Shown in pieces: positions 4,137 through 40,405 of a DNA stretch of 40,405 bases. Source of the stretch: Prasinococcaceae sp. CCMP 1430. Taxonomy: Eukaryota; Plantae; Prasinodermophyta. The stretch lies in the NCBI GenBank assembly GCA_013416795.1, contig RQSC01000678.1, positions 38,116-78,520 of the forward strand, given 5' to 3'. A model generated the notes under the pieces. That model worked only from the letters and a program-made list of their open reading frames with translations. It was not told the origin of the DNA and searched no databases. Position numbers and translations under genes: made by a program. Each line of letters begins with the position of its first letter. Positions within the stretch are counted from its first letter, which is position 1.

Positions 4137-7100
4137 CTACCTATTATCAAGCGTCGGCAAGACGCCGCTGGGCGTTGCCGGCGTCGCCGCCAGGACGTCC
4201 TCCGCCCGCGCTGCCTGCGCCCTCGCGGCCTCCTCAGCCAAGCGAGCCGCGACCTCGCCATCCGGCGCCAGTGCGTTCGCGTTTTCAGCGTCGACGACCT
4301 CAAGCGCCCCCCCCCGGGCCTCCACGCCCCCCCTTTCTGCCTGCGTGGTGTGGACCTTGTACCTCGTGAGGAATCCGCGCACGGCCGCCTGCACATACTC
4401 TGCCGCGTGGTAGTGCCCCGCCGTATATTCTGTCTCGGCCTGTGCTGACACCTTGAAGTAGTCCAGCTTTTTCAATATCTTGATGCGAACCTCCTGCTCG
4501 ACGGTCGTGGGCAGCGGGTGCGCCGCGACGCGCGCGGCCAGACTGTAGAGAGTCTCGTGGAAGTTGATCTTCCCATTGTGCACGCTTATGTCGAGATGCC
4601 GCAGCATGGACATCAGGGTGCTCGAGCTCACGCCGGTGCCACGAATGCCCAGCGGCGGCTCCAGCCTGGTGATGAGCTTGGGCAGCAGGCGCCGCTTGAT
4701 GAAGTACGAACCCTCCGTGTCGAGCTCCTGCCAGACTTCGATGAAGCGGTCCATGTGGGCGGGCACCACGGGCAGCGTCTCGGCGTCTGAGCTTGCGATG
4801 ATTTCGTCGAGGATGACGCCGATCACCAGATTGAGCACGATGAGCGCGCACACAACAACAAACGAGGAGAAGTAGAGGATCGCAGCGCCCTCCCATGGGG
4901 TGCAGCGGTTCTCCACGGCCCGGCTGCCGTACCACTCGCGCGCCATCTGGATGCACGGGCTCGACGAGTCAAAGTACACCTCCTCGGCCGTCTGGTCGAC
5001 GCGCTCGCAGATCGTGCCGTCGGCAAGTGTCAGCCGCAGCCAGCGCAGGCCGGTGTCGTCGTCGTCGTAGGGCTCGCACGTGGGCGGCGCGTCGGCACCG
5101 TACTTGACCTCGAGAGCCGCGTTGACCGCCGCAGCGCTCGCAAAGGACGCCACCGCGCTTGTGGCTTGCTGCGCGATGCCTCGGGGGAACAGGGCGTCCA
5201 CGGGGCACTTGAGCGGGCTCAGCACCAAGTCGACGTCGACTATCGTGCCGTCCCCCGACACCTGAGGCATGGTGTAGTCAAGCTGGTAGTAGGCCTCCGA
5301 GAGCGAGTGGCACTCCTGGGTGACCATGGCATCCCACATGATGCCGTTCCACGACTCGCCGGTGGCCATGCGGAAGAGAGTCATCATGGCCGCAGGGAAG
5401 TCTCGGAAGTTGGCGTACCTGTTCAGGTTCTCGCCGTAGCGCACGGAACCGAAGAGGTTCATGCCCATGATCGAGTAGATGAAGAAGAACAGCAGGAGCA
5501 CGCTGCCAACGTTCACGAGCGCGGGCAGCGAGAACAGCAGCGTGTGAAAGAGCGTCTTGAGGCCCTTCGCACGCGGCACCAGCCGGAAGATGCGCGCGAC
5601 GCGAAAGACGCGAAGCAGGCTCACCACGGGGATACCGCCCCCGGTGAACGCATCAAGGCAGAGTCCAATGATGGAGAATTGCACCACCACGAAATCGAAC
5701 TTGTTCCAGGGGTTTCCGAAGTAGTTGCGCGGGCCGAGCGCCCAAATCTTGAAGACCATCTCGAGGAAGAAGATCGTCGTGAAGACGAAGTTGGCCCAGA
5801 AGAGCACGGCCACCCACTCATCCGTCATGTCAGCCGTGCGCATCGACATGAACACGATGTTCGCCATGATGCAGGACATGATGAAGCCGTCGAATGCGTC
5901 CGATTGCACGACGTGGAAGGTGCGCGCGCGCCACTCGCCGTCGGGCGGGCTCAGCCGCACGAGAGGCTTTACGCCGGAAATGATGCGCTGGATGTTCACC
6001 CATGCCTGCTGCTCCGAACTGAGAAACACACTCACGCCGTCGTCCGACTTGTGCTTCATCTCGTTGAACTTGTCGATGGTCACGCCAACGAAGAGGTTCA
6101 TCACGAAGAACGAGCCGATGATGATGAAGGACGCGAAGTACAGCGCCAGCGCGGGGTTGGTGTCGCGGATGGGTTGCGTGGTCGACCCCGTGGAGTCGAT
6201 GCCCTGGTACATGGTATCGAGGAACATCTCGAGCGTGGCCATCTCGAAGAGCGTCAAGATGGACGCGAAGATGTTGTCGAAGTGCTTGTCGCGGTTGTTC
6301 CACGAGGTCGGCAAGTTGTAGTAGTCGAGGCTGGCAGCATGCGTGACCATCGCGGCGGCAGCAGGGCTCTCCACGGCGTTCACGCCGCTGTCGGTCCACA
6401 ATGCCCACGCAGCCGCGAAGCCATCCGCGTCGTCGCCGAAAGCCACCTCGAAGAGCGCGCGCGCGGCGACCATGTCGGTGTGCACGATGCACGACGCTTT
6501 CTCACGCCCCTCTGCGTCTGGAGCACACGCGACGCCACTGCGGACCTCGAAGCCATTCTGCGCCCACCATGCGAGCGCATAGTACTTGGAGCCGGCAAAT
6601 TCGGGCAGGTCGGTGAAGGGCGCGACGTTGGGCATGCTTGGGATTTCGCAGAAGTCCTTGTCAAGCTCCATGGGCTGCAGGCCAAGTGGCCCTCCATCGG
6701 CGTCCACGAAACCTGGCGGGTAGAGCGCAGCCGGGACGTCGAGCTTGCCCGCGCGCGGGCCGAGCATCGGAAAGTCGTCGACCTCCAAGCTCTCGCCGCA
6801 CTTGCCAAACGAGTCGGGCAGCGACATGCCGTTGATCTGCGCGACGTGCCAGATGTCATCGCCGCAGTCGAAGCCGCAGTAGCGCAAACGGCCCAGAAGC
6901 AGGTTGAGGCCCAGGATGCCAAAGATGAGGTAGAAGAGCGCGCACACCAGCAGCACATTGCCGATGGCGGGGATCGCCTTGAAGAGCGCATTCACGATGA
7001 CCTTGATGCCCGTGGCGCGGCTGGCCATGCGCAGGGGGCGCAGCGCGCGGAAGGTGCGCAGCGCGCGCAGCGCGTCGAGCGCGCCGCCGCTCGCGGCGAG

Positions 7101-10100
7101 TCCGACAACGCCAACAATGACGATGAGGAAGTCGAGGACGTTCCAGCCATTGCGAAGGTAGGCATCCTTGTGGGCGACGAATCCCATGGTGATCACCTTG
7201 AGCACCATCTCGACAGCGAAAAGCGCCACAAAGAGGACGTCCAAGCCAAAGAGCGCCGCGCGCAAGGCCTTGCCACTCGACGAGTTGTCGTTGAGCAGCG
7301 CGTTGCTGTCGAGCGCGAGCAGCATCGAGCTGATCAGGATGGCGGCGATGATGCCCAGCTCGAACTTGTTGTGAGACACCACCCTCGCGCAGGCCACGCG
7401 CACCGCGTTGTCCGGCGGGAACACGAAGAGGGAGTTTGCCTCCGGCACGAGGCTAGACAGGAGCTCATCGATTGAGCGCTCTGTCTGCGACGCGTTCGAC
7501 GCGTTCGACTCAGACAACAAGCGGCGAAGTGACGGGCCGCCGGGCTTGTCCGAGAAGCTCTGGCTCCTGGGAATTGAGTTGGCGTCACCCTTGGCGCTCG
7601 GAGAAGCCTTGCTCACCTCGGACGATGCCAGCTTGGCGTCCTCCTCGTCCTCGCCCTTGACGTCGTCCTCGTCCTCGTCATCGTCGTCGTCGTCGGCGGC
7701 AAAATTGTCTAGCAGGATCGCCAGGAAGAGGTTGAGGATGATGTAATTGCCGATGGAGAAGAGCAGCAGGAAGTAGAGCGCGAGCGCGTCGGACGTGGCG
7801 TACATGCCGTCATACATGACCTCGTTCCAATTCTCCCCGGTGAGCACCTGGAAGATGGTGATGATCGACCAGTAGACATCGTCGAAGTTGTGCCGCGGGC
7901 GGTAGGGCCGGCCCACGTAGCGCATGGCGGCGATCTCGAAGACATCGCCGTCACCGTCCTTCTCGCCCGCGAACATCATGCAGCCTTCGACGCCATCCGC
8001 GCGGCGGTCGGATACGAGGCTGGCGACGTCTGGAGAAAACGTCACGGTTGCGCGCTGCTGGGTGTTCAGGCCGGCGTAGATGTCGCCGGCGAGGAAAACG
8101 TCGCAGGGTTCAGTTGCGAGCCCGAACGTGCAGTCGAATTTGGACGCACAAGCGACGCCGGCGTCGTCGACGGACGCGTAGCACTCTCTGTGGTCCGAGC
8201 ACTTGCCTCCGCCACTGAGGAAAGCAGGCACGCCTTGCACCGCGCCTCCTGGGGGGCACATTTGGCCGCCATCGTCACAGAACTCGTAGCGGTAGCCGAA
8301 GAGCTGCATCCCGAGCAGGGCAAAAACGAAGATGAAGAGCACCAGGATGAGGCTGAGGTACGTCACCGAGGCCACGCTCCTGAAGACGGTGGTGATGATC
8401 GAGTTGAGCTCTTTCCACGACCGCGCGAGCTTGAAGACACGCAGCAGGCGGAAGGCGCGCAGCACGGAGAACATGCCGCCGCCGCCCGAGCCGCTCGCCA
8501 AGGTGACGACAATCTCCACGATTGACAGCACCACGATGACGCCGTCGAAGACATTCATGGGGTCCTTGCGGTAGCCGCCCGGGCCGAGCGCGGTGATCTT
8601 CAGGACCATCTCGACGGCGAACGCCGCCGTCAGGATGTAGTTAATGGCGTCGAAGGCAGTGAACATAGCATCGGGCATGCCGTCGAACTCGGCCGCCATG
8701 ACTATGGTGTTGATGACTATGAGGGCGACGATGACGTACATGAACGACTCGTGCTCGACGATGCTCTGGCAGGTGCGCACAAGCTTGCTCGAGCTCTGCA
8801 CGGGAACATCGCCGGGCATGCGCCCACCGTTGTCGAACGCCTTGGCATCGCTGGTCACCTTTTTATCACCAGCGTTGTCCTGAGCGGACTCCGCTTCTTC
8901 GTCGTCGTCGCGCCGGGTGAAGTACAGGTACAGCACAGCCAGCGCCAGGTTGATGGCGTAGAACGAGCCGACGATAATCAGGAAAAGGAAGTAAATCCAT
9001 ACCCAGGGGCTCTTGCCGTCCTGCAGGTCGTACATCACGTCGGTCCATCCCTCCATCGATACGCACGTGAAGATCGTCAGCCACGCCCACAGGATGTTGT
9101 CAAACGAGATGGCGTTGTGCTTCGGGTTCTCGCCGCGCACGCAGGTCAGCTGCACGCCGTCGCCATCCCGCGGACACACGCGCCCCGCGCCACTCCTTCC
9201 GCTGTACGACGCCTTGCCCCACTCGTCCAGCCCCTCCCACGGGCCCTCGACCACTCCCGCATCCTTCAGGAGGTCCCACTGTGCCTCGCGCGCGGCCTCG
9301 ACGTCCTTGGCTTTGCCACCGGCGGCCTTGATCACCTCCAGCCACTCGCACGCCCCGCCTGCCCCACCAGCGTACGCGAGCGCCTCCTCAGAGCACAGGT
9401 GCGGGTGCTGCGCATACAGGGCGGCGAGGTCCCGCTCTTCGTAGTCACCCATCTCGAGAGGCATTGGGTACATCGGCCCCGAGCACAGGTCGCCCTCGGG
9501 GTCCTCGAGCACGTACGTGAGCAGGCCCGTGGCGGTGTCAAAGCCCTCGTAGCCGCACCTGTTGCGCATGCGCTCCGCAAAGGACTGGATGCCCACGATG
9601 CCCAGTATGAAGAACAGGAAGCCGCAGAGCAGCAGCACGTTCCCGAGCATGGGAAGCGAGCTCATGAGCGTCACCACGAGCTTTCGCAGCCCCTCGACAG
9701 AGGTGAGCGTGCGCAGCGGGCGGAGCACGCGCACGGTGCGAATGGACGTGTAGTTGCCGATGAGTCCACTGCTCGCGATGATGCCCAGCAGGACCACCAG
9801 AAAGTCCATCACGTTCCAGGGGTCGCGCAGGTAGGCACCCTTGCCCAGGAAGAAGCCCATGCCCAGGACCTTGAGCATCATCTCAATGACGAAGAGAGGC
9901 GTGAAGACCCACTCGCTCACAGCGAGGAACTTCCCCAGCCGGCTGCTCTCAAAGTTTGGCGCGTTCGAGCCCATTGCCAGCGTGATGCAATTGAGGAGGA
10001 TGAGCAGCAGGATGGCGTTGTCGAAGAGCTTCGAGACGATCGCGCGCATAGCAGCCACCCGCACAGGGTTGCCCTTCGTGAAAACGAACAGCGAGCGCTC

Positions 10101-10376
10101 CGAGAAAGTAGACACGCGCTTGATGCCCTGCGGCGTGAATGACTTGATCGTCGCCTCCGTCATGTCGCCCAATTGTATTCGCCAGTCAACCCCTTCACTG
10201 CCGGCGTCGCCGCCGCTGTCACCGCCGCTGTGCTGCGAAGGGTCACCGGCGCTCGAGCCGTTGGAGCCGCCCCCCACGGCGAAGGGCCCCACAGCATCGC
10301 CGCCGCCGCCCGCGCCAGCCTCAGCGTCCGCACCGCCCGCCTCCTTGGCAGGCGGCATCCACGCGTCCTCGGCCAT
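4137..10376 (-). CDS. Four-domain voltage-gated cation channel alpha subunit, Ca2+-type EEEE filter, intronless, about 2079 aa
   Basis: Four 6-TM repeats with S4 segments IRTVRVLRPLRTL, LRAFRLLRVFKLAR, LRALRTFRALRPLR and LRVFRVARIFRLV. Pore motifs SMEGW, TGENW, TLEMF and TGESW. C-terminal EF-hand-like segment (FIEVWQELDTEG) and IQ motif (EYVQAAVRGFLTR). ATG 10376 (MAEDAW) is preferred; the ORF is open to 10424. Confidence 0.96.
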   Translation of the reverse strand: MAEDAWMPPAKEAGGADAEAGAGGGGDAVGPFAVGGGSNGSSAGDPSQHSGGDSGGDAGSEGVDWRIQLGDMTEATIKSFTPQGIKRVSTFSERSLFVFTKGNPVRVAAMRAIVSKLFDNAILLLILLNCITLAMGSNAPNFESSRLGKFLAVSEWVFTPLFVIEMMLKVLGMGFFLGKGAYLRDPWNVMDFLVVLLGIIASSGLIGNYTSIRTVRVLRPLRTLTSVEGLRKLVVTLMSSLPMLGNVLLLCGFLFFILGIVGIQSFAERMRNRCGYEGFDTATGLLTYVLEDPEGDLCSGPMYPMPLEMGDYEERDLAALYAQHPHLCSEEALAYAGGAGGACEWLEVIKAAGGKAKDVEAAREAQWDLLKDAGVVEGPWEGLDEWGKASYSGRSGAGRVCPRDGDGVQLTCVRGENPKHNAISFDNILWAWLTIFTCVSMEGWTDVMYDLQDGKSPWVWIYFLFLIIVGSFYAINLALAVLYLYFTRRDDDEEAESAQDNAGDKKVTSDAKAFDNGGRMPGDVPVQSSSKLVRTCQSIVEHESFMYVIVALIVINTIVMAAEFDGMPDAMFTAFDAINYILTAAFAVEMVLKITALGPGGYRKDPMNVFDGVIVVLSIVEIVVTLASGSGGGGMFSVLRAFRLLRVFKLARSWKELNSIITTVFRSVASVTYLSLILVLFIFVFALLGMQLFGYRYEFCDDGGQMCPPGGAVQGVPAFLSGGGKCSDHRECYASVDDAGVACASKFDCTFGLATEPCDVFLAGDIYAGLNTQQRATVTFSPDVASLVSDRRADGVEGCMMFAGEKDGDGDVFEIAAMRYVGRPYRPRHNFDDVYWSIITIFQVLTGENWNEVMYDGMYATSDALALYFLLLFSIGNYIILNLFLAILLDNFAADDDDDDEDEDDVKGEDEEDAKLASSEVSKASPSAKGDANSIPRSQSFSDKPGGPSLRRLLSESNASNASQTERSIDELLSSLVPEANSLFVFPPDNAVRVACARVVSHNKFELGIIAAILISSMLLALDSNALLNDNSSSGKALRAALFGLDVLFVALFAVEMVLKVITMGFVAHKDAYLRNGWNVLDFLIVIVGVVGLAASGGALDALRALRTFRALRPLRMASRATGIKVIVNALFKAIPAIGNVLLVCALFYLIFGILGLNLLLGRLRYCGFDCGDDIWHVAQINGMSLPDSFGKCGESLEVDDFPMLGPRAGKLDVPAALYPPGFVDADGGPLGLQPMELDKDFCEIPSMPNVAPFTDLPEFAGSKYYALAWWAQNGFEVRSGVACAPDAEGREKASCIVHTDMVAARALFEVAFGDDADGFAAAWALWTDSGVNAVESPAAAAMVTHAASLDYYNLPTSWNNRDKHFDNIFASILTLFEMATLEMFLDTMYQGIDSTGSTTQPIRDTNPALALYFASFIIIGSFFVMNLFVGVTIDKFNEMKHKSDDGVSVFLSSEQQAWVNIQRIISGVKPLVRLSPPDGEWRARTFHVVQSDAFDGFIMSCIMANIVFMSMRTADMTDEWVAVLFWANFVFTTIFFLEMVFKIWALGPRNYFGNPWNKFDFVVVQFSIIGLCLDAFTGGGIPVVSLLRVFRVARIFRLVPRAKGLKTLFHTLLFSLPALVNVGSVLLLFFFIYSIMGMNLFGSVRYGENLNRYANFRDFPAAMMTLFRMATGESWNGIMWDAMVTQECHSLSEAYYQLDYTMPQVSGDGTIVDVDLVLSPLKCPVDALFPRGIAQQATSAVASFASAAAVNAALEVKYGADAPPTCEPYDDDDTGLRWLRLTLADGTICERVDQTAEEVYFDSSSPCIQMAREWYGSRAVENRCTPWEGAAILYFSSFVVVCALIVLNLVIGVILDEIIASSDAETLPVVPAHMDRFIEVWQELDTEGSYFIKRRLLPKLITRLEPPLGIRGTGVSSSTLMSMLRHLDISVHNGKINFHETLYSLAARVAAHPLPTTVEQEVRIKILKKLDYFKVSAQAETEYTAGHYHAAEYVQAAVRGFLTRYKVHTTQAERGGVEARGGALEVVDAENANALAPDGEVAARLAEEAARAQAARAEDVLAATPATPSGVLPTLDNR

Positions 10377-11268
10377 CGTGGCTCTGTGAACGTCCGCGCC
10401 AGCGCTTGTCGCCGGCTCCCACACCCCCGTCCCCGGACCGCAGCCCGTTGCGCTAAAGCTTCGGCCTGGGAGACATCGGTTCGCTCCGGCCTGTGCGCGT
10501 GCCGGCGCGGCGCAGATGGCGGGTCAGCGTCGTCCACGCACGGAGCGCTACCACGCAGAGGCATTGCGCGGCGGCGAGTGCGATGCTGCCAGCTACGTGC
10601 ACGCGTCGCCATCCCCAGCCACGTCAGGCATCTCGCGCGGCGCGCGGAGGATGCGCGGCGCAGCGCCGCGGACACGCGCCCTCGCGGCGTTCGCGCATCC
10701 GCGCGCCTCGGGATAAAAAAAAATGCCTTCGGCTCGGCGCCGGCTGGCGGCGGCACAGCCAGCGCGCTGCTCGCCCACCTGCCCCCTCCCCGCACGCGCG
10801 CGCGGGCGTGAAGCGCGGCTGAGGGGTCTGCGGAGTCACCCGCGCCGAGGGAAATGACATAATGCGAGGGTCCGTTCCCCTCGCCCCCACTGACCACGCA
10901 CGCCTCTCGCCCCCTGAGTACACAGCGGGGGAACCAAAAAAAAAATGCAGCGACGAGGTCAACGCCGCCGGCGTGCGGCCCGCGTGCTCCGCGAGGCTCG
11001 CGAGCGAGCTCCCGCGGTGGTGGGGCGGGCGGCGATGAAATACAGGGGGGTCGATTGCGCGCCCCACCGCGCGCCGCGAGCCCCGACCTCGGCGCCGCCG
11101 CAGCGGCAGGTGCCTCAACTGCTGCGGGCGTGCCGCTGGGCCGAACGGGGCCAAAAAAAAAAAAGGGGGGGGGGACCCCACCCCACCCACCTGCCGCGCG
11201 GCGCGCGGTGTGGGGCGCCCGCTGCGACGCCTATTCCGGTCCGCGCGGCGCGCGTGTTGAACGCAGCC

Positions 11269-27066: not shown

Positions 27067-27924
27067 GCTCGACGCCCGCTGGGGGCGGGGCCACGCGCCG
27101 CACACCTCGTGTGTGCAGTGCGTTGCCCGCACCGCATTCATCGCAGGAGCGCAAAATGCCCAATGCGCGCACGAACTGCTGTATCGCGTGACATTGTTGG
27201 TGCAAAGAAAGACACCACTGCGACGCGACCCCCCATAAAAAGAAACGCAGGAAGTGATTTTTGGGGGCGCTCCGCGTCTTTTGACGTCACAACGAATGCT
27301 TTCGAATGCGGCACTTGCCAATTTCGGTATCCATAGCCACGTGTTCTCTCACTGCCTTTTTCCGGCGTCATTTCACGCTGCGAAGTTGCCAACTCGCGAG
27401 CTTTGACGGTGGCAAGGCCACATCCTCACCGGTACCAGCTTGCCGATCACGCGCACGGCCCGACACGATCACAGCCCCCACCCACGGGCACGCCACGCCC
27501 ACACGCCCCTACACACGCACGCGCAGGCGCACGAGCACACACGCACGCGCCGACCCGTGCGCGTGCACACACGCACGCACGCGCACGTGCACGCGCACAC
27601 GCCAACACCGCCACGCGCCATAGGAAGTCCAAGCCTTACCGTAAGAAGCTTAGTCTGTCTGGTACCTCGCGCGTTACGCGGGTCCCGTCCCACAAAGAGC
27701 ATCAAAGTGTGGGGGCGGAGATGCTCCCCCGCCTGGGCACGAGGAAGGGAGTGCATTCGGAGTCGGNGCGCGCGTGTGGGTGCGGGGTCCCAGCGCGCGG
27801 TCGGCGCGGAGGGCGGGCCCTCCGCCCCTCCTGGAGCGCGCGGCGCGCGCCGAACTTTACGCGCGATCGCCGATCGCGCTTTTCTCGCGCCTTGGGCCGC
27901 GGGACACACATTTGCGGCGCGCCA

Positions 27925-30900
27925 ATGCCGGGGCGGGGCGGCGGCCGTGCCGCGCGGCGGGCGGTGGCTTTGGCAGGGGGGGTGGCACTGGCCTTACTCG
28001 CCGCCGGGGGGCCGCGCGCGGCGCGCGGACAGGGCGACGCCGTGGCGACGCTCGCGCCTGACGTGCTCGATGGCGGGGCGCGTGTGGACGTGCGGCTTTC
28101 GGGGCATGGCAGGGCTGTGACCGGCATCCAGTTTAATCTCGCGAGCTGCGACGGCGATGAGCGGGTGGATGTCGAGGCGGCCACAGGGGGGCTCGCAGAG
28201 GCGGCCGGCCTGACGTCACAGGTGTCGGGCTCCACCGTTTTGTTCTTTAACTTCAACGACGGCGCGATCGAGACGACGGGCGTACTGACGACCCTGTCGG
28301 TGCTGCCCGACAACCAGCGCAGTGACGGGTACTGCCTCACTTCGGCGGTTGTCAGCGCGTCTGATGGGGCCCCCATCGAACTGGATCCGAGTGCTCTGTG
28401 TGCCTGCGATGGCTCCTCGGGTGCAACAGGGGCAAACGAGCAAGCGCCACCGCCGCCTCCGTCGCCCTCCTCGCCGTCGACCGGCCAGCCACCGTCACCG
28501 CCGAGCCCACCGCCGAGCGCCGGGGCAGCATCGAATTCGTCAGGCGTCCTGACGCCGTCGCTCGAGGTGTCTGATGGCGGAAGTCGGGTGGACATTACCC
28601 TCGCTGGGCTGAGCTCGGATCTTGGGGGGTTCCAGGCCACCCTCACGTCGTGTGACGGCGAGCCGGTACCCATCGACAGCGCCTCGGGGGGGGCCGCTGA
28701 GCAAGCGGAGATGACGGTGCAGGTCAACAACGCGACTGAGCTTGTGTTCAGTCTCATGGGGGCCACAATTCCCGCGAGCAAGGCTAACAACGACGTACTG
28801 TCGATACTGGCGATCGCCGACGCGGACGTCCAGGCGGGATACTGCCTGTCGAATGTCCAGGCAAGCGACACTGTGGGTCGAGCTCTCGACTTCGACGGGT
28901 CCGAGCTGTGTCGATGCGATCTCGATGAGCCGAACGCCGGGGCGGGCAGCACTGGCGAATCGCCACCATCGCCTCCACCCCCCTCGTCACCCCCCTCGCC
29001 GCCGAACTCTACAGACGGTTTCATCATCGACGAGGACGTGCGGCTCTTCGTAGGAGAGCTGACCGACGGTGGCGTGGACGTGGACATCATGAACCCAGAT
29101 GTGGCAGTGGCTGCCTTGCAATTTACTTTCATCGATCAGGACGGCAACCCACTGACAGTCGCCAGCGTGGGCCAGGAGGGCGCCGCGGCCGACGCGGCCG
29201 TACCTGCCACCGTGAGCGGGGATCTCGTGGCGTTCTTCAGCCTGGGTGGCGGCTCCATCCCTGCCGGTGGCCAGCGTCTGCTGGCTCGCGTCGAGTTCGG
29301 GAGCGCGAACGGCGTGACCTCGGTGTGCCTTGAGCAGTTCGTGGTCACGTCCGAGACCGGCGACGTTCTGACGGCCAGCACCGTGTGCGGCGGCGAGGAC
29401 AACGGCACGGACGTGCTGGCCAACGTGCGCGCACAGCACCGTGTGTGGCGGCACGCCGGCCGTCGCGGGCGGCGAGGACAACGGCACGGACGTGCTGGCC
29501 AACGTGCGCGCCGAGCCGGTGAGCGACGGCACCTTCGACGTACTGTACCGGTCGAAGGTGCCGCTGTCGAGCTTCCGATTCGAGCTGCGCACGCTGCTCG
29601 GCCAGGACGTGACCTTCGCAAGCGCGATGCCCGAGAGCGGCGCTGCTGGCGATGCAGGCTTCTCGGTGGTCGTGCGCTCGACGGGCGCCGTGAGTGGCTC
29701 GCTACTCACCAGCGACGGCCCGCCCGTCCCCCGGTGGTCGCCGCTGCTGATGCGACACGACTGCTGGTAGCGCCACTTGTTGTGGTGCCTGCCGTGCGTC
29801 GAGACCGCTGTCGGCCCCATCCTGAGCGCAGAGGACGGCACCTCCGTGGCCGTCGAGGAGGCGTCGTGCGAGGTCCCCAGCGAGGGCCCCGACGGCCCCA
29901 TCTCGGTTCCCCCGGGACCTGATGGTGCTGGAAACTTCGAATTCCTGCTGCGACCTTCTGAGACTGTCGCCGGGAAGATCGACGTGTACTACAGGTCGGA
30001 TGTTGAGGTGTCCGGGTTCTCTTTCACCTTGCTGAGCGAGGCGGGCACTCCCATCGCGCTCAATACCACGGTGAGGCCCATCGGCCGCGCTGTCGACAAC
30101 AACTTTTCAGTCTTCGAGGCGGGCTTCAGTGGGGGCGTCGTGGGACTGTACAGCGGCCTGGCCAGCCAGGTGCTGCCACAGACAGACTCCGAAGAGGGTG
30201 AGCTCCTCTTGGAAGTGTACACCGGGGCGGACGTCGTCGATGCCACCGCGTTGTGTATCGCAGAGGACGCCTTGGTGACCATCGCGGCGGCCAACACCAC
30301 GGGCGACACGACCGTCTCCGCGGGAGTGCCAGACTGCCTGCCGACTGCCGACGTTGTGCTGTCCACGCCCTCGCCGCGCGCTGTCCTAGGGTCCCTAAAC
30401 GTGAGCGTCGTCTCCACCGAGGCGATGAGCTCGGTGTTCTTCTACGTGCTCCAGGGCGGCTCTGGCACCCCGGCCCGCTTCGACAAGAGCAGGAAGGTTG
30501 CTGGTCTTGCTGTGGATAGCGGCCTGGTCGTCAACACGCTCGACAGCGGCCTGGTCAGTGCAACAGCATCGCAGGCGTCCACGAGCGTGCCAGCACAGGC
30601 TGTGTCGGCAGAACTCGTTTCGATCCCGGTGGCAGTCCCAGACGGCACTGACCTGTGCATCGTCGGGGTGCAGGTGACCGGGAAGGCCGGCGATGCGCTG
30701 ACTACGAGCGTCGTCAGTTCGAGTTTTTGCGACGGCCTCGTGCCACCCACAGTTGCGTCTCCTCCTCCACCTGTTTCGTCCCCCCCACCCCCCCCGGTCG
30801 TGGTCGCACCGCCTCCGCCGCCTCCTGTGGCCATGCCGCCCCCACCCGTCGCCGTTGGGGCGGTCGAGCTCTTCACGCCGACCGCCGTGACTGGCGGCGT

Positions 30901-32086
30901 GGTGGAGGTGTACTACACGGCCACGGCGCCGATCGGAGGACTGCAAATGCGCGTGGAAGTAGGCGGCAATGGCGCGACATTTGATTCTGACGCTGCCACA
31001 GTCGGTGGAGCGGCTGCCGACGCCTTCGAGGTCGTGACGGGTAGCGGTCTTGGACCGAACGTGGTGGCCATCGGCACCGGCGATCCGCTGGACAGGGCGG
31101 CCGGCCAGTCGCTGCTGCTGTCCCTGAAGCTCGCGAATGGCACCGAGGCCGAGGGCACGCTCCCTTGCATCGCCGACGCAATCTTCACCGACACGGAGAA
31201 TCCGCCGCGTGCCATGGACGTGACGTTGCCGGACTGCGAGCAGCAGCCGCAGGCGAACTCACCGCCGCCATCCCCACCCCCGTCACCCCCGCCCGCGCCG
31301 GCGATCCCAGAAACCACCGCCGTGGCGTTCAACATGCGCTTCCCCGGTACGCTGGTCGCGACTGATGCGGATGGCATCGCGGCGAAGTCGGGTCTGCGCG
31401 AGGCCTTCGGCGAGCTGTACAGCGTGCCGCCGACGGCCGTGTCGGTGTTCATGTCGTTCCTGTGCGCAGACGGCGTTGTGCATAGCACACCTCAGCCGTG
31501 CACAGGACAGCGATCCGCCGATATCCCTGTCGTGTCAGCCGACGTGAACGTGGGTCAGGTGGCAGTATCTGCGGCCGAGTCGGTCACGGTCGACGACATC
31601 CGCCAGGCGCTCGCGTCCTCTACGAATGCGGGCATGCAAACCCTCGTGGGCACCGCCGACGCAGACTCGATCGGCGTGTTCGAGGTTGGCACGCCGAGCC
31701 CCCCGCTCGAAGCACCGCCCGCAGCTGCGCCTCCACCGCCTCCGCAGGAGGCAAGCGGCAGCAGCCCTTCGTCGGGCTCCCAAAGTAGTGGCGGGGGTGG
31801 GTTGAGCGGCGGCGCGATCGCGGGCATCGTCGTCGGGAGTGTCTTCGGCGCCTTGCTGCTCGTGCTGCTCACCTGGTGGCTCTGCCAGCGCAGGTCGTCT
31901 TCGGCGGCGGCGCGCGGCGGCGGTTCGAACCAGTTCGCGGTCTCATCGCAGCGCTCACCCGCGCACGGCGGCAGTGCCTACAACGGCGCAGGTGGCAGCG
32001 CGGGCTCGCCGGTCGTCTCCAAGAAAATGTCAAAGAAGCAGCGCGCGGTGATGCGCCACCAGGAGTTCGTGGATGAGGAGGTTTGA
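27925..32086 (+). CDS. Type I membrane protein with at least 7 cohesin-like beta-sandwich modules and Pro/Ser linkers; interrupted by two assembly artefacts
   Basis: Signal peptide (VALAGGVALALLAAGGPRAARG|Q). Repeated modules of about 125-140 aa with a VDV/I...G(F/I/L)QF...G.A..A...IP...L pattern and C-terminal Cys pairs. TM helix AIAGIVVGSVFGALLLVLLTWWLC near 31814-31885, then a short cytoplasmic tail. Frame break at about 29433; spurious stop at 29768-29770 inside a complemented segment. Confidence 0.8.
29732..29805. other. 74-bp segment that is the exact un-reversed complement of the repeat consensus (probable assembly artefact)
   Basis: Base-by-base complement of GCCACCAGCGGC...GCAGCTCTG, as seen intact at 37189-37262. 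Confidence 0.95.
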
Positions 32087-32206: not shown

Positions 32207-33745
32207 TTAAGCGGCCTGCGGCGGCTCCTCGGGAATCTCCCCGAGCTTGTACACCCTCGCCGCGGTCGGCGCGCACGCGGCTCCCGCGCCTGGTCCGAAG
32301 CCACTGGCGGCTCCGTGCTGAACTGCGGGCTGACCGAACGCCACCGTGGGCGAGCCCGCCGCGGCTGGTTGTCCAAACGCCGCCGCTGGCGAGCCGGCGA
32401 CGACGGGGCTGGCGGGAGCCGGCTGCCCAAACGCGGTGGCGGGCGACCCCGCGGAGGCGGGGGTCGCCTGGGGGAAGGCCGACCCCGGAGAGACCGAGCC
32501 ACCTAATCCACCAGGATGAGCCTGCTGCTGCTGCGGCGCCGGCGGCTGCTGCGCGCCGAAGTGGCTGGGCTGCCCGAAGCCGCTCGGCTGCCCGAAGCCT
32601 GCGCCTGCGCCAGTCTGTCCGAAGCCACTGCCAGCGCCTGCGCTCGTCTGCCCCAAACCCGCTCCGGCACTGGGCTGTCCGAAGCCCCCACCAGCGGTCG
32701 CACTGGGCTGTCCGATGCCAGCGCCGGCCGCGGCCGCCTGTCCGAAGCCGCTGGGTTGTCCGAAGCCGCCTGCCGCGACTCCGCCTTGCGCCTGCCCGAA
32801 CCCGCCACCTGCGGGGGAGGCGCTGGCGCCCTGTCCAAACCCGCCTCCGGTCGTTCCGGCCACGCCCTGTCCGAAGCCGCCTCCCGCAGGCTTGCCGAAG
32901 CCCCCGCTGGCAGGCATGCCGAACCCACCCGCAGCCGCACCAGCGGCGCCCTGCCCGAAGCCGCTCGACTGTCCGAAGCCCCCTCCCGTCTGTCCAAAGC
33001 CGGCGCTTCGTTGGCCGAAGCCTCCGCCCGTCTGTCCGAAGCCACCGGCGGCCTGCGCTTGGCCCGTGCCCGAACCGAAGCCTCCTCCTCCCCCGCGGAA
33101 CCCTCCCTGCTGCTGCTGCTCGCCAGCGGGCCGGCCGAACCTGAGCGGTACGACGCCCTGTGGCGCCGGTGCTGCGGTCGGCATGCCGCCGCGCGCCTTG
33201 GAGACGGCCATGAGTTCCTGCTTGCGCGCGTGCGACGCGCGCTGCCACTCCGCGGCGTACGCCTGGAGCGGCGTGCCCGCACGCGCCGCCTCCATCGCGG
33301 CGAAGCGGTCCTCCTCGAAGCTCCAGTCGCCCCCCACGGCGCTCTGCCCGCTGCGCAGCGGCGCGTAGCACGTGAGATGCCACCGTGGCATCTCGTTCTT
33401 GAGGTCGTTGTTCGCCTCGGTGCGCCAGTCGCCGCCGCCGCGCGCGCCGGCATTCGTGTCGCCCACGCGCCCCTGCAGCGCGCCGAATCGGTTGCCCCCG
33501 CCAGCGTGCCCGCCCCCGCCACCCCACCCACCCTGGCCGCCCCACGCGCCGCTTCCGCCCCTGCTGCCGCCGTTGCTGCTGACGCGTGGAGCGCGCGCTG
33601 TGGCCCGCGTCGCGCGCTGCTCGGCGCTCGGCTCGCTCGGTCGGGGCGCGCGCTCGGTCGGCAGCTTCCTCAGCCTCGTGAAAAGCAGGGGAAGGGGGGG
33701 GGGAGGCGGCAGGAGCGCGCTTTTCGGATCAAAATTGCGCTTCAA
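32207..33745 (-). CDS. NUP42: FG-repeat nucleoporin, NUP42/NUPL2/CG1-like; 5' end unresolved
   Basis: The block NDLKNEMPRWHLTCYAP...DWSFEEDRFAA resembles the NUP42/CG1 N-terminal conserved region. Many GGFGQ/AFGQ repeats follow. The C-terminal YKLGEIPEEPP resembles the Gle1-binding motif. No credible ATG upstream of the conserved block. Confidence 0.72.
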   Translation of the reverse strand: MKRNFDPKSALLPPPPPLPLLFTRLRKLPTERAPRPSEPSAEQRATRATARAPRVSSNGGSRGGSGAWGGQGGWGGGGGHAGGGNRFGALQGRVGDTNAGARGGGDWRTEANNDLKNEMPRWHLTCYAPLRSGQSAVGGDWSFEEDRFAAMEAARAGTPLQAYAAEWQRASHARKQELMAVSKARGGMPTAAPAPQGVVPLRFGRPAGEQQQQGGFRGGGGGFGSGTGQAQAAGGFGQTGGGFGQRSAGFGQTGGGFGQSSGFGQGAAGAAAGGFGMPASGGFGKPAGGGFGQGVAGTTGGGFGQGASASPAGGGFGQAQGGVAAGGFGQPSGFGQAAAAGAGIGQPSATAGGGFGQPSAGAGLGQTSAGAGSGFGQTGAGAGFGQPSGFGQPSHFGAQQPPAPQQQQAHPGGLGGSVSPGSAFPQATPASAGSPATAFGQPAPASPVVAGSPAAAFGQPAAAGSPTVAFGQPAVQHGAASGFGPGAGAACAPTAARVYKLGEIPEEPPQAA

Positions 33746-34575: not shown

Positions 34576-37500
34576 ACCGTGCCTGGCAACGCTGTGCTGA
34601 CGACCATCGCGGTGAACAACACCACGGACGGCACGCAGCTCTGTGCTGTCGGCCCCATCCTGAGCGCAGAGGACGGCACTTCCGTGGCCGTCGAGGAGGC
34701 GTCGTGCGAGGTCCCCAGCGAGGTCCCTGGTCAGACCCCCGCCGACAACGCCACCAGCCCCGACAATGCGACCGACAGCGGCGGCGGCTTCGTCATCGAC
34801 GAGGACGTGCGCCTCTTCGTGGGAGAGCTGACCGACGGCGGCGTGGACGTGGACATCATGAACCCAGATGTGGCAGTGGCTGGCTTGGAGCTCCACTTCA
34901 TCGATCAGGACGGCAACAAGCTCACCATTGGAAGCGTCGGTGATGAGGGGGCCGCGGCCGCCGCAAACCTGCCAGCACGTAGCGAAGGGAATCGCGTAAC
35001 CTTCATCGACCTAGCAGCCGGCACAGCATCCATCCCTGCCGGTGGCCAGCGCTTGCTTGCTCGCTTCGAGTTCGGGAGCACGAACGGCGTGACCTCGGTG
35101 TGCCTTGAGCAGTTCGTGGTCACGTCCGCGACCGGCCAGACTCTAGAGACCAGCACCGTGTGTGGCGGCACGCCGGCCGTCGCGGGCGGCGAGGACAACG
35201 GCACGGACGTGCTGGCCAACGTGCGCGCCGAGCCGGTGAGCGATGGCACCTTCGACGTACTGTACCGGTCGAAGGTGCCGCTGTCGAGCTTCCGGTTCGA
35301 GCTGCGCACGCTGCTCGGCCAGGACGTGAGCTTCGCGAGCGCCGTGCCGGACACCGGCGCTGCCGGCGACGCAGGCTTCTCGGTGGTCGTGCGCGCGACC
35401 GGCGCCGTGAGTGGCCTGCGCCTCGACGGCCCGCCCGTCCCCGCCACCAGCGGCGACGACTACGCGGTGCTGACGACCATCGCGGTGAACAACACCACGG
35501 ACGGCACGCAGCTCTGTGCTGTCGGCCCGATCTTCAGCGCAGAGGACGGCACCTCCGTGGCCGTCGAGGAGGCGTCGTGCGAGGCTCCCAGCGCCGCCAC
35601 GAGCGACAACGCCACCAGCCCTGACAATGCAACCGACAGCGGCGGCGGCTTCGTCATCGACGAGGACGTGCGCCTCTTCGTGGGAGAGCTGACCGACGGC
35701 GGCGTAGACGTGGACATCATGAACCCAGATGTGGCAGTGGCTGCCTTGCAATTTACTTTCATCGATCAGGACGGCAACCCACTGACAGTCGCCAGCGTGG
35801 GCCAGGAGGGCGCCGCGGCCGACGCGGCCGTACCTGCCACCGTGAGCGGGGATCTCGTGGCGTTCTTCAGCCTGGGTGGGGGCTCCATCCCTGCCGGTGG
35901 CCAGCGTCTGCTTGCTCGCGTCGAGTTCGGGAGCGCGAACGGCGTGACCTCGGTGTGCCTTGAGCAGTTCGTGGTCACGTCCGAGACCGGCGACGTCGTG
36001 GAGGCCAGCACCGTGTGCGGCGGCAGCTCGGCCGGCAGCCCGCCGAGCTCGAGCTCGCCGTTGCCGTGCCTGCACGACCGGTTGCACGCGCGCGAGCCGG
36101 TGAGCGACGGCACCTTCGACGTACTGTACCGGTCGAAGGTACCGCTGGCGGGCTTCCAGTTCGAGCTGCGCACGCTGCTCGGCCAGGAAGTGAGCTTCGC
36201 GAGCGCCGTGTCGGACACCGGCGCTGCTGACGCCGCCGGCTTTACGGTGACCGTCGGTCCGACCGGCATCGTGACTGCTCTTGGCAGCCTGGCCAGTAGC
36301 GACCAGCTGATACCGGCCACCAGCGGCGACGACTTGCGACACGACTGCTGGTAGCGCCACTTGTTGTGGTGCCTGCCGTGCGTCGAGACTGCTGTCGGCC
36401 CCATCCTGAGCGCAGAGGACGGCACCTCCGTGGCCGTCGAGGAGGCGTCGTGCGAGGCTCCCAGCGCCGCCACGAGCGACAACGCCACCAGCCCCGACAA
36501 TGCGACCGACAGCGGCGGCGGCTTCGTCATCGACGAGGACGTGCGCCTCTTCGTGGGAGAGCTGACCGACGGCGGCGTGGACGTGGACATCATGAACCCA
36601 GATGTGGCAGTGGCTGCCTTGCAATTTACTTTCATCGATCAGGACGGCAACCCACTGACAGTCGCCAGCGTGGGCCAGGAGGGCGCCGCGGCCGACGCGG
36701 CCGTACCTGCCACCGTGAGCGAGGATCTCGTGGCGTTCTTCAGCCTGGGTGGCGGCTCCATCCCTGCCGGTGGCCAGCGTCTGCTGGCTCGCGTCGAGTT
36801 CGGGAGCGCGAACGGCGTGACCTCGGTGTGCCTTGAGCAGTTCGTGGTCACGTCCGAGACCGGCCAGACTCTAGAGACCAGCACCGTGTGCGGCGGCAGC
36901 TCGGCCGGCTCGGGCGGCTCGAGCTCGAGCGGCAACGGCACGGACGTGCTGGCCAACGTGCGCGCCGAGCCGGTGAGCGACGGCACCTTCGACGTACTGT
37001 ACCGGTCGAAGGTACCGCTGGCGGGCTTCCAGTTCGAGCTGCGCACGCTGCTCGGCCAGGAAGTGAGCTTCGCGAGCGCCGTGTCGGACACCGGCGCTGC
37101 TGACGCCGCCGGCTTTACGGTGACCGTCGGTCCGACCGGCATCGTGACTGCTCTTGGCAGCCTGGCCAGTAGCGACCAGCTGATACCGGCCACCAGCGGC
37201 GACGACTACGCTGTGCTGACGACCATCGCGGTGAACAACACCACGGACGGCACGCAGCTCTGCGCTGTCGGCCCCATCCTGAGCGCAGAGGACGGCACCT
37301 CCGTGGCCGTCGAGGAGGCGTCGTGCGAGGCTCCCAGCGCCGCCACGAGCGACAACGCCACCAGCCCCGACAATGCGACCGACAGCGGCGGCGGCTTCGT
37401 CATCGACGAGGACGTGCGCCTCTTCGTGGGAGAGCTGACCGACGGCGGCGTGGACGTGGACATCATGAACCCAGATGTGGCAGTGGCTGCCTTGCAATTT

Positions 37501-40405
37501 ACTTTCATCGATCAGGACGGCAACCCACTGACAGTCGCCAGCGTGGGCCAGGAGGGCGCCGCGGCGGACGCTGCCCTGTCGCCAACCATCGGCGACGACG
37601 GCGTGATCTTCTTCGCCCTTGGCAGCACCTTCACCATTCCCGCGGGGGACCAGCGCCTGCTGGCCCGCTTCGAGTTCGGGAGCACGAATGGCGTGACCTC
37701 GGTGTGCCTGCAGCAGTTCGTGGCGACGTCCGCGACCGGCGACGTTCTGACGACCAGCACCGTGTGCGGCGGCGAGGACAACGGCACGGACGTGCTGGCC
37801 AACGTGCGCGCCGAGCCGGTGAGCGACGGCACCTTCGACGTACTGTACCGGTCGAAGGTGCCGTTGGCGGGCTTCCAGTTCGAGCTGCGCACGCTGCTCG
37901 GCCAGGCAGTGAGCTTTGCGACGGCCATGCCCGAGAGCGGCGCCGCTGGCGACGCTGATTTCGTGACGGTCGTGGGCCCGACCGGCGTCGTGAGCGGCCT
38001 GCGCCTCATCAGCGACGGCCCGCCCGTCCCCGCGACCAGCGGCGACGTCTACGCGGTGCTGACGACCATCGCGGTGAACAACACCACGGATGGCACGCAG
38101 CTCTGCGCCGTGGGCCCCATCCTGACCGCGGAGGACGGCGACTCCGTGGCCGTCGAGGAGGCGTCGTGTGAAGTCCCCGACAATGCGACCGACAGCGGCG
38201 GCGGCTTCGTCATCGACGAGGACGTGCGCCTCTTCGTGGGAGAGCTGACCGACGGCGGCGTGGACGTGGACATCATGAACCCAGATGTGGCAGTGGCTGC
38301 CTTGCAATTTACCTTCATCGATCAGGACGGCAACCCACTGACAGTCGCCAGCGTGGGCCAGGAGGGCGCCGCGGCCGACGCGGCCGTACCTGCCACCGTG
38401 AGCGGGGATCTCGTGGCGTTCTTCAGCCTGGGTGGCGGCTCCATCCCTGCCGGTGGCCAGCGTCTGCTGGCTCGCGTCGAGTTCGGGAGCGCGAACGGCG
38501 TGACCTCGGTGTGCCTTGAGCAGTTCGTGGTCACGTCCGAGACCGGCCAGACTCTAGAGACCAGCACCGTGTGCGGCGGCAGCTCGGCCGGCTCGGGCGG
38601 CTCGAGCTCGAGCGGCAACGGCACGGACGTGCTGGCCAACGTGCGCGCCGAGCCGGTGAGCGACGGCACCTTCGACGTACTGTACCGGTCGAAGGTACCG
38701 CTGGCGGGCTTCCAGTTCGAGCTGCGCACGCTGCTCGGCCAGGAAGTGAGCTTCGCGAGCGCCGTGTCGGACACCGGCGCTGCTGACGCCGCCGGCTTTA
38801 CGGTGACCGTCGGTCCGACCGGCATCGTGACTGCTCTTGGCAGCCTGGCCAGTAGCGACCAGCTGATACCGGCCACCAGCGGCGACGACTACGCTGTGCT
38901 GACGACCATCGCGGTGAACAACACCACGGACGGCACGCAGCTCTGCGCTGTCGGCCCCATCCTGAGCGCAGAGGACGGCACCTCCGTGGCCGTCGAGGAG
39001 GCGTCGTGCGAGGCTCCCAGCGCCGCCACGAGCGACAACGCCACCAGCCCCGACAATGCGACCGACAGCGGCGGCGGCTTCGTCATCGACGAGGACGTGC
39101 GGCTCTTCGTGGGAGAGCTGACCGACGGCGGCGTAGACGTGGACATCATGAACCCAGATGTGGCAGTGGCTGCCTTGCAATTTACTTTCATCGATCAGGA
39201 CGGCAACCCACTGACAGTCGCCAGCGTGGGCCAGGAGGGCGCCGCGGCCGACGCGGCCGTACCTGCCACCGTGAGCGAGGATCTCGTGGCGTTTTTCAGC
39301 CTGGGTGGCGGCTCCATCCCTGCCGGCGGCCAGCGTCTGCTGGCTCGCGTCGAGTTCGGGAGCGCGAACGGCGTGACCTCGGTGTGCCTTGAGCAGTTCG
39401 TGGTCACGTCCGAGACCGGCCAGACTCTAGAGACCAGCACCGTGTGCGGCGGCAGCTCGGCCGGCTCGGGCGGCTCGAGCTCGAGCGGCAACGGCACGGA
39501 CGTGCTGGCCAACGTGCGCGCCGAGCCGGTGAGCGACGGCACCTTCGACGTACTGTACCGGTCGAAGGTACCGCTGGCGGGCTTCCAGTTCGAGCTGCGC
39601 ACGCTGCTCGGCCAGGAAGTGAGCTTCGCGAGCGCCGTGTCGGACACCGGCGCTGCTGACGCCGCCGGCTTTACGGTGACCGTCGGTCCGACCGGCATCG
39701 TGACTGCTCTTGGCAGCCTGGCCAGTAGCGACCAGCTGATACCGGCCACCAGCGGCGACGACTACGCTGTGCTGACGACCATCGCGGTGAACAACACCAC
39801 GGACGGCACGCAGCTCTGCGCTGTCGGCCCCATCCTGAGCGCAGAGGACGGCACCTCCGTGGCCGTCGAGGAGGCGTCGTGCGAGGCTCCCAGCGCCGCC
39901 ACGAGCGACAACGCCACCAGCCCCGACAATGCGACCGACAGCGGCGGCGGCTTCGTCATCGACGAGGACGTGCGGCTCTTCGTGGGAGAGCTGACCGACG
40001 GCGGCGTAGACGTGGACATCATGAACCCAGATGTGGCAGTGGCTGCCTTGCAATTTACTTTCATCGATCAGGACGGCAACCCACTGACAGTCGCCAGCGT
40101 GGGCCAGGAGGGCGCCGCGGCCGACGCGGCCGTACCTGCCACCGTGAGCGAGGATCTCGTGGCGTTTTTCAGCCTGGGTGGCGGCTCCATCCCTGCCGGC
40201 GGCCAGCGTCTGCTGGCTCGCGTCGAGTTCGGGAGCGCGAACGGCGTGACCTCGGTGTGCCTTGAGCAGTTCGTGGTCACGTCCGAGACCGGCCAGACTC
40301 TAGAGACCAGCACCGTGTGCGGCGGCAGCTCGGCCGGCTCGGGCGGCTCGAGCTCGAGCGGCAACGGCACGGACGTGCTGGCCAACGTGCGCGCCGAGCC
40401 GGTGA
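34576..40405 (+). CDS. Second cohesin-like tandem-module coding array, partial at both ends
   Basis: Candidate acceptor GGCGCAG| at 34575. Frame 1 is then open to the window end, except for TAG 36352-36354 inside a complemented segment. Same modules as in 27925-32086. Confidence 0.8.
36037..36092. other. 56-bp un-reversed complement segment (probable assembly artefact)
   Basis: Exact complement of TCGGGCGGCTCG...AACGTGCGCGC, as seen intact at 36910-36965. Confidence 0.95.
36335..36389. other. 55-bp un-reversed complement segment (probable assembly artefact) creating TAG 36352-36354
   Basis: Exact complement of ACGCTGTGCTGACG...GCAGCTCTG, as seen intact at 37208-37262. Confidence 0.95.

Follow-up and report, generated by a model that had tools for sequence, protein, structure and literature searches.

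Whether a green alga could assemble proteins on its surface in the manner of a bacterial cellulosome is the question raised by a gene of Prasinococcaceae sp. CCMP 1430. This gene, here called gene 1, occupies positions 27925-32086 on the forward strand of a 40,405-nucleotide (nt) stretch of contig RQSC01000678.1, which is referred to below, at its full length, as the window. Cohesin-dockerin pairing is the textbook bacterial route to extracellular multi-protein machines, and an original prediction, made from the letters of the DNA alone, had described the gene 1 product as a scaffoldin-like surface protein with at least seven cohesin-like modules. According to our analysis, the observation behind it is partly confirmed and the interpretation given to it is partly supported. 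The gene 1 product is a membrane protein of type I that carries a row of cohesin-fold modules in its ectodomain, and the best explanation of the whole, which we consider on balance probable, is a membrane-anchored cohesin-fold array acting as a docking scaffold.

Non-cellulosomal cohesins are known from all three domains of life, as stated in PMC6030884. Eukaryotic cohesin domains described so far are single domains in holozoan adhesion proteins (PMC6030884, Sanchez-Pulido and Ponting 2018), and no dockerin homologues are detectable among vertebrate proteins (PMC6030884). In the full-text literature, within a coverage that falls short of all journals, no paper links Prasinoderma with dockerins; likewise, the few publications that combine dockerin, cohesin and phytoplankton, judged by title and abstract and as far as the incomplete journal coverage reaches, apparently include none on an algal cohesin-dockerin system. 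What gene 1 adds to the known cohesins is a cohesin-fold module family for which no public hidden Markov model (HMM) exists and which, in a green alga, makes up a type I membrane scaffold of several modules.

Architecture of the Gene Product

The protein starts with a predicted signal peptide of about 34 amino acids (aa; 27925-28026, including the start codon), judged by inspection of the translation. The ATG at 27925 is followed by an Arg-rich n-region, an Ala/Leu/Gly hydrophobic core and small residues before the first module, in agreement with what had been claimed for this end. Seven modules of about 125-140 aa follow on the same strand: M1 (28027-28443), M2 (28543-28959), M3 (29020-29400), M4 (29507-29935), M5 (29936-30352), M6 (30353-30736) and M7 (30860-31237). 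M2 is the module whose structure was predicted, M4 is interrupted in the sequence as assembled, and M6 is the most divergent. With the family HMM described below, E-values of 1.8e-23 (M1), 5e-21 (M3), 5.5e-10 (first half of M4), 7.6e-13 (M5), 5.8e-10 (M6) and 1e-16 (M7) were obtained. The other six modules align to M1 at 17-38% identity, with invariant Gly, Ala, Leu and Cys positions, and these alignments and HMM matches bear out the seven alignable modules with the motifs first listed for them.

The Pro/Ser/Gly linkers said to separate the modules were found at some of the boundaries. Extensin-like Ser-Pro(3-5) linkers are present between M1 and M2 (28444-28542), between M2 and M3 (28960-29019), between M6 and M7 (30737-30859, a long Pro-rich stretch), and between M7 and the following domain X (31238-31312, with SPPP repeats), while the M4/M5 and M5/M6 boundaries are devoid of a Pro-rich linker. 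The remaining parts, that is, a further domain, one transmembrane helix and a short tail, are located as initially described. Domain X is a membrane-proximal, orphan stretch of 126 aa after M7 (31313-31690), connected by a Ser/Gly-rich spacer to a transmembrane helix (31802-31885) that a Gly run precedes. This helix marks the peak hydropathy of the protein, being its most hydrophobic 19-mer with a mean Kyte-Doolittle hydropathy of 2.68, and shows the GxxxGxxxGxxxG pattern of a glycine zipper; transmembrane helices of the glycine-zipper type are associated with helix-helix packing. A cytoplasmic tail of 66 aa leads to the stop codon at 32084-32086 (31886-32086 in total) and ends in an F-V-[DE]-[EL]-like motif. 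Eleven N-x-S/T sequons are present in the ectodomain, two of them overlapping and located in M4 as read in silico, and no catalytic domain was detected by Pfam in the 27925-32086 protein. Several cohesin-fold modules carried on linkers by a non-catalytic protein with a C-terminal transmembrane anchor represent the layout of a scaffoldin.

Domain X gave no match in Pfam or NCBIfam, and no homologue of it was found in searches that included a word-indexed protein search, a kind that says nothing about absence. Its predicted helix and strand elements alternate. A SEA-type identity would be a guess, with no Pfam SEA match and a single, low-confidence AlphaFold2 (AF2) model, built from the sequence on its own, whose predicted local distance difference test (pLDDT) of 39.5 is too poor for a structure search.

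Fold of the Module

In regard to the fold, M2 was modelled with AF2 on an alignment of 126 family sequences that contained no canonical cohesins, and templates were not used. The model (pLDDT 88.6, predicted template modelling score 0.80) is a nine-strand sandwich, which corresponds to the nine-stranded flattened beta-sandwich of the cohesin family PF00963. When it was compared with the PDB by Foldseek, ranks 1-19 were all cohesins, with E-values from 6e-5 and TM-scores of about 0.5-0.59, and they spanned types I, II and III, the Archaeoglobus non-cellulosomal cohesin and the cohesin-like modules of Clostridium perfringens. VIA-align, an independent all-against-all comparison with 48,161 chains, also placed cohesins at all of ranks 1-14 (Z 9.6-11.5), aligning 112-124 of the 139 residues with a root mean square deviation of about 3-3.8 Å for most of them. 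FN3 domains, carbohydrate-binding modules (CBMs, including CBM2) and most other beta-sandwich matches reached a VIA-align Z of about 6-7, below all 14 top cohesins. The cohesin-like fold originally proposed is therefore upheld by both structure searches with the AlphaFold model, and the alternative that the modules belong to a common Ig, FN3 or CBM type was not borne out.

At the level of sequence, the relationship is marginal. The best PDB match of the family profile, and the only near-significant one, was 5n5p_A, cohesin 5 of Ruminococcus flavefaciens ScaB, with an E-value of 0.0015 over 96 profile positions that span the GFQF-type strand. Among the 126 family members scanned with Pfam, Cohesin was the commonest family match, yet it was found in only 3 of them and weakly, with a best E-value of 3.9e-4. 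Neither Pfam nor NCBIfam has a model covering the modules. Judged on the predicted structure, the module is a divergent member of the cohesin fold group that lies outside PF00963 by threshold.

A Module Family Shared with Marine Bacteria

When a profile built from the six intact modules was compared with a set of 1.84 billion representative proteins, 424 of these matched at E<=1e-3, including 70 at E<=1e-10, and 2-14 matched stretches were present in many of them. Most of the matches belong to uncultured marine bacteria, mainly Neomarinimicrobiota and Vicinamibacteria, and a small number to algae. As 424 database proteins match the module profile, the repeat is a real domain family. The modules of the window match the HMM built from the 126-sequence alignment with E-values from 1e-10 to 1e-25. 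Its consensus reads IAGFQF ... ASGGxAxxAGFTVS ... TVLGFS ... TIPAG ... CL ... SD ... DC, with conservation above 90% at G-F-Q-F and G-G-x-A. For two Cys columns, conservation across the family is 87-88%. The original prediction had taken this Cys pair for a eukaryotic addition; because bacterial members also carry it, the pair is instead ancestral to the family. A large domain family that is without a Pfam or NCBIfam model and is abundant in the surface proteins of SAR406 and marine Acidobacteriota would be of help in the annotation of ocean metagenomes.

A scan of prokaryotes, with one genome per species and a 14-sequence alignment as query, confirmed 129 loci in marine metagenome-assembled genomes (MAGs). 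The best 80 of the 129 belong almost all to Candidatus Neomarinimicrobiota (SAR406), marine Vicinamibacteria or unnamed marine MAGs. The bacterial modules occur in tandem arrays, with up to nine modules per truncated piece of an open reading frame (ORF). The likeness to secreted marine bacterial proteins that had been proposed from the sequence pattern holds, since the relatives are such proteins and some of them carry terminal sorting or docking domains. P0010 ends in a sorting domain of the type IX secretion system (T9SS), while P0008, P0023 and P0052 end in Dockerin_1 above the Pfam threshold and P0027 matches it weakly. A trypsin-like protease domain is present in P0023 and P0027, above the Pfam cut-off only in the latter. 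Giant surface proteins of the T9SS type, up to 3321 aa long with 13 matched stretches, make heavy use of the module in SAR406 and marine Acidobacteriota. Short Cys-rich spacers of the 'CGVCDGDGSSC' type were also seen in many bacterial members (loci L001-L080; P0001, P0003, P0010).

Several relatives are eukaryote-like. P0002, a protein of 1191 aa from a Tara Oceans contig with 67.9% GC, is complete and consists of a signal peptide, at least seven matched modules, a transmembrane segment and a tail. P0006 is another such member, 2104 aa long; P0009 comes from a catalogue of marine eukaryote transcripts (Tara) and groups with P0151, a protein of another alga, and the P0015 cluster includes an entry of Prasinococcus capsulatus. 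The transmembrane segment of gene 1 with its GxxxGxxxGxxxG pattern recurs in P0002, P0006 and the P0060 cluster, a further eukaryote-like group, and the tail of gene 1 aligns with those of P0002 and the P0060 cluster, both of which share an F-V-E-L-like C-terminal ending. The transmembrane segment and the tail look like a common anchor and sorting cassette. One further candidate, P0025, was rejected as an orthologue, as it comes from a low-coverage metagenome contig and is identical for 86 aa only, after which it is unrelated.

A quick maximum-likelihood tree, calculated for 80 modules and 145 columns, provided the module phylogeny that had been suggested as a check. The bacterial modules fall to one side of a branch with weak support, and the algal ones have long branches. 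Units of P0009 and P0151 group with their counterparts M3 and M4 at 95-98% support in the Shimodaira-Hasegawa-like approximate likelihood ratio test, which marks the gene as an old and native component of this algal lineage. With its weak backbone support and the long algal branches, the tree is compatible with transfer in either direction and with one or several events. The distribution of the module raises the question of an old gene exchange between marine bacteria and picoalgae.

A predominantly bacterial module family could also be taken as a sign of bacterial contamination of the assembly. We rejected this explanation, which we regard as very improbable, on the basis of GC content, neighbouring genes and the GC content of the bacterial loci. 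GC is uniform across the whole window (63-72%), and gene 1 is flanked on the same contig by eukaryotic genes, whereas the named bacterial loci that were checked have 34-59% GC. Long uninterrupted ORFs of the window encode a PP2A B56 subunit, a four-domain voltage-gated cation channel, an Urb2-family protein and an amidohydrolase; the first three also confirm the eukaryotic host proposed at the outset. Furthermore, the gene 1 product follows a eukaryotic type I plan with extensin-like linkers, and its modules share only about 30-37% identity with the bacterial ones. Gene 1 belongs to the nuclear genome of a marine green alga that is GC-rich and poor in introns.

A Proposed Docking Scaffold or a Passive Stalk

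In the docking scaffold that we favour, the Pro/Ser linkers, probably glycosylated, would keep the modules at a distance from the membrane and present them as a multivalent array. Every module would serve as a protein-docking site, most likely for dockerin-tagged secreted proteins, and the cell surface or wall could in this way come to carry enzymes or adhesive proteins. Hydroxyproline-rich glycoproteins of the green lineage are the model for hydroxylation and glycosylation of such linkers, and by this analogy the linkers of gene 1 may be hydroxylated or glycosylated rods. The parts of the proposal differ in strength. Dockerin binding proper is a tentative possibility with less than an even chance. 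It is rather doubtful that gene 1, the second array described below and their paralogues would capture dockerin-tagged proteins of the alga itself, as a genuine cohesin-dockerin surface assembly in the green lineage.

Comparison with known systems brings out both sides of this proposal. Cellulosomal and non-cellulosomal cohesins (PF00963; 5n5p, 2xdh, 6kgc, 5nrk, 1ohz) are, like the algal module, nine-stranded beta-sandwiches of about 130-140 aa, and the GFQF-type strand motif of the algal module family aligns with 5n5p; the resemblance in sequence, in contrast, is marginal, as said above, and the algal modules have a conserved disulfide-type Cys pair. Scaffoldins and the algal protein alike are non-catalytic, cell-anchored tandem arrays on Pro-rich linkers, and the bacterial members of the module family that are fused to type I dockerins offer a parallel to cohesin-dockerin systems. 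The algal host is, in contrast to those of scaffoldins, eukaryotic; the anchor is a type I transmembrane helix and not an SLH domain or a sortase signal, and dockerin binding by the algal modules is only predicted. The repeat module of Neomarinimicrobiota and Vicinamibacteria is homologous to the algal modules at the HMM level and has the same consensus, the same Cys pair and the same organization in long arrays. The bacterial proteins, however, end in T9SS or dockerin domains and contain Cys-rich spacers, while the algal one has extensin-like linkers, a glycine-zipper transmembrane helix and a tail.

Among eukaryotes, TMEM132 and the coherin cadherins of choanoflagellates and sponges likewise carry a cohesin-type module in a type I ectodomain, with a proposed role in adhesion (PMC6030884). 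Theirs is a single cohesin domain among Ig or cadherin domains in holozoans, while in the green alga the entire ectodomain is built of seven or more modules. Hydroxyproline-rich glycoproteins of green algae and plants (extensin, pherophorin) are secreted or surface proteins that also have Ser-Pro(3-5) linkers between globular domains, but the globular domains of the algal protein are of the cohesin fold, the protein is membrane-anchored, and hydroxylation and glycosylation of its linkers are predicted by analogy.

Several observations weigh against a docking scaffold. The sequence identity of the modules to solved cohesins is just 8-18%, and the HMM check against PF00963 that had been proposed at the outset was negative: in the Pfam scan of the window pieces no Cohesin match was obtained at E<1, and no module reached the gathering score. 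The YcnI-like entries 7me6 and 3esm follow just after the cohesins in VIA-align with Z of 9.5-9.6, and a reeler domain is also among the Foldseek matches; because of these near-equal Z values and the reeler match, the fold alone is no proof of dockerin binding. No dockerin is encoded in the window. The seven modules are very divergent from each other, and classical scaffoldin cohesins of one specificity are more alike than the modules of gene 1. Most bacterial relatives have the appearance of stalks in very large surface proteins, and a dockerin-like motif pair was present in the same ORF piece in only 1 of 90 bacterial cases, which would fit a stalk role too. Finally, the reading frame as assembled is broken twice, in or next to M4, as discussed in the next section.

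Some of these points also fit another explanation, in which the array is a passive stalk or adhesin. Its modules would then be disulfide-stabilised rigid spacers, or homophilic or carbohydrate-binding adhesion units of a glycoprotein of the wall or matrix, comparable to the Ig-like repeats of bacterial fibrillar adhesins. The giant tandem arrays of the bacterial relatives (13 stretches in 3321 aa) with their T9SS tails, mostly without a dockerin in the ORF piece, agree with such a role, and so do the high divergence among the gene 1 modules and the extensin-like linkers. Moreover, no other recognisable domain was found in the eukaryote-like homologues. On the other hand, the best structural matches are cohesins rather than adhesin Ig-like domains, and some bacterial members are dockerin-fused, as in adaptor scaffoldins. 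We consider a stalk or adhesin a serious possibility, of which we would not be greatly surprised to learn, but one that falls well short of probable.

If the docking scaffold is true, a membrane scaffold with several cohesins in a green alga that branches early would alter the picture of eukaryotic cohesins. It would represent a eukaryotic counterpart of the cellulosome principle, reached via a module family common to SAR406 bacteria, and eukaryotic use of the cohesin-dockerin assembly principle would become directly testable.

Frame Breaks and the Second Array

The continuous reading frame on which the original prediction relied did not hold. The first break is a 79-nt direct duplication at the M3/M4 junction (29389-29516, forward strand) that shifts the frame by +1; its 49-nt copies at 29389-29437 and 29468-29516 are 96% identical and lie 79 nt apart. 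A junction of the M3/M4 type is continuous in a second array of modules downstream (array 2) and in the homologue P0151. A 21-nt insert encoding 'TPAVAGG' is present in the second copy of the duplication and in array 2 and is missing from the first copy. With regard to a possible intron at this place, an intron with canonical GT-AG or GC-AG borders and the length of exactly one repeat unit cannot be placed there, and 58 other GT/GC-AG combinations would restore the frame, none of which stands out. Nothing favours an intron here, and P0151 and array 2 are uninterrupted at this point.

The second break lies within M4, where a 75-nt segment on the forward strand (29731-29805) is complemented but not reversed, which creates a stop codon. 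In a k-mer search, its plain complement was found at 37188, 38871 and 39744, among six downstream sense copies of the repeat, while its reverse and reverse complement occur nowhere else in the window. With 29732-29805 of this segment complemented in silico, M4 scores 68.5 bits against the family HMM, compared with 40.3 bits as assembled and 74.6 bits for an intact downstream copy. The explanation of the segment as a mirror repeat was ruled out by eye, as it is not its own reverse. P0151, which is 41-44% identical, is open through both break points and matches the complement reading residue for residue; M4 therefore counts as a true seventh module, and the coding sequence was ancestrally free of the breaks.

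A k-mer scan revealed two further complemented segments of 56 nt each within the repeats, at 36037-36092 and 36334-36389 on the forward strand. Of the three complemented segments, one creates a stop and another silently garbles about 18 codons. We know of no biological mechanism that produces complement-only segments, and they look like artefacts of assembly or polishing. Because such segments have no known biological origin, we prefer assembly artefacts over recent lesions as the explanation of the frame breaks. The window also contains a gap of 23 N at 2935-2957 and a single N at 27767, 158 nt upstream of the gene 1 start codon, and for this reason the assembly is to be regarded as a draft in this region.

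In array 2 (34588-40405, forward strand), M3-type and M4-type modules, 13.5 in all, follow each other with a period of about 873 nt. Its HMM matches share a single frame that stays open up to where the window ends. Array 2 lacks a start codon and a signal peptide, and its homology starts abruptly in mid-module at about 34588, exactly at a complement breakpoint. At the DNA level, in blastn, M3 of gene 1 is 96-97% identical to its counterparts in array 2 and M4 is 84-88% identical. Array 2 could be a paralogue, possibly giant, that is truncated at its 5' end or misassembled; alternatively, it could be the displaced middle part of a single giant gene.

These findings could also be explained by a pseudogene or an assembly chimera, that is, by a decaying locus or by a collapsed and misjoined array in which gene 1 and array 2 are one giant gene. 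The frame shift at the duplication and the stop in M4 would fit such an origin, as would the location of all three complemented-not-reversed segments inside these repeats, the high identity of M3 to units of array 2, and an array 2 that begins in mid-module at a complement breakpoint, lacks a start and a signal peptide and runs off the window. Beyond the two breaks, however, the frame is open through all seven modules, the transmembrane helix and the tail, with matches to the family HMM, and the complete homologue P0002 has the same plan. The M4-to-M5 junction of gene 1 is matched by a counterpart in P0151, and its module order therefore looks native, while the complement-only segments point to an artefact and not to decay. 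In our opinion, a pseudogene or chimera is improbable, and a native membrane-anchored array, imperfectly assembled, remains the preferred explanation of the locus.

Other Features of the Window

Two other ORFs of the window were noted, both on the reverse strand. The channel gene corresponds to an uninterrupted ORF of 2095 aa at 4137-10424 with four Ion_trans repeats, characteristic of a four-repeat voltage-gated cation channel, and weak matches to PKD_channel and GPHH. Between the two arrays, an ORF of 512 aa at 32207-33745, which has no Pfam match, is rich in phenylalanine-glycine (FG) repeats of the GFGQ type and may encode an FG-nucleoporin-like protein.

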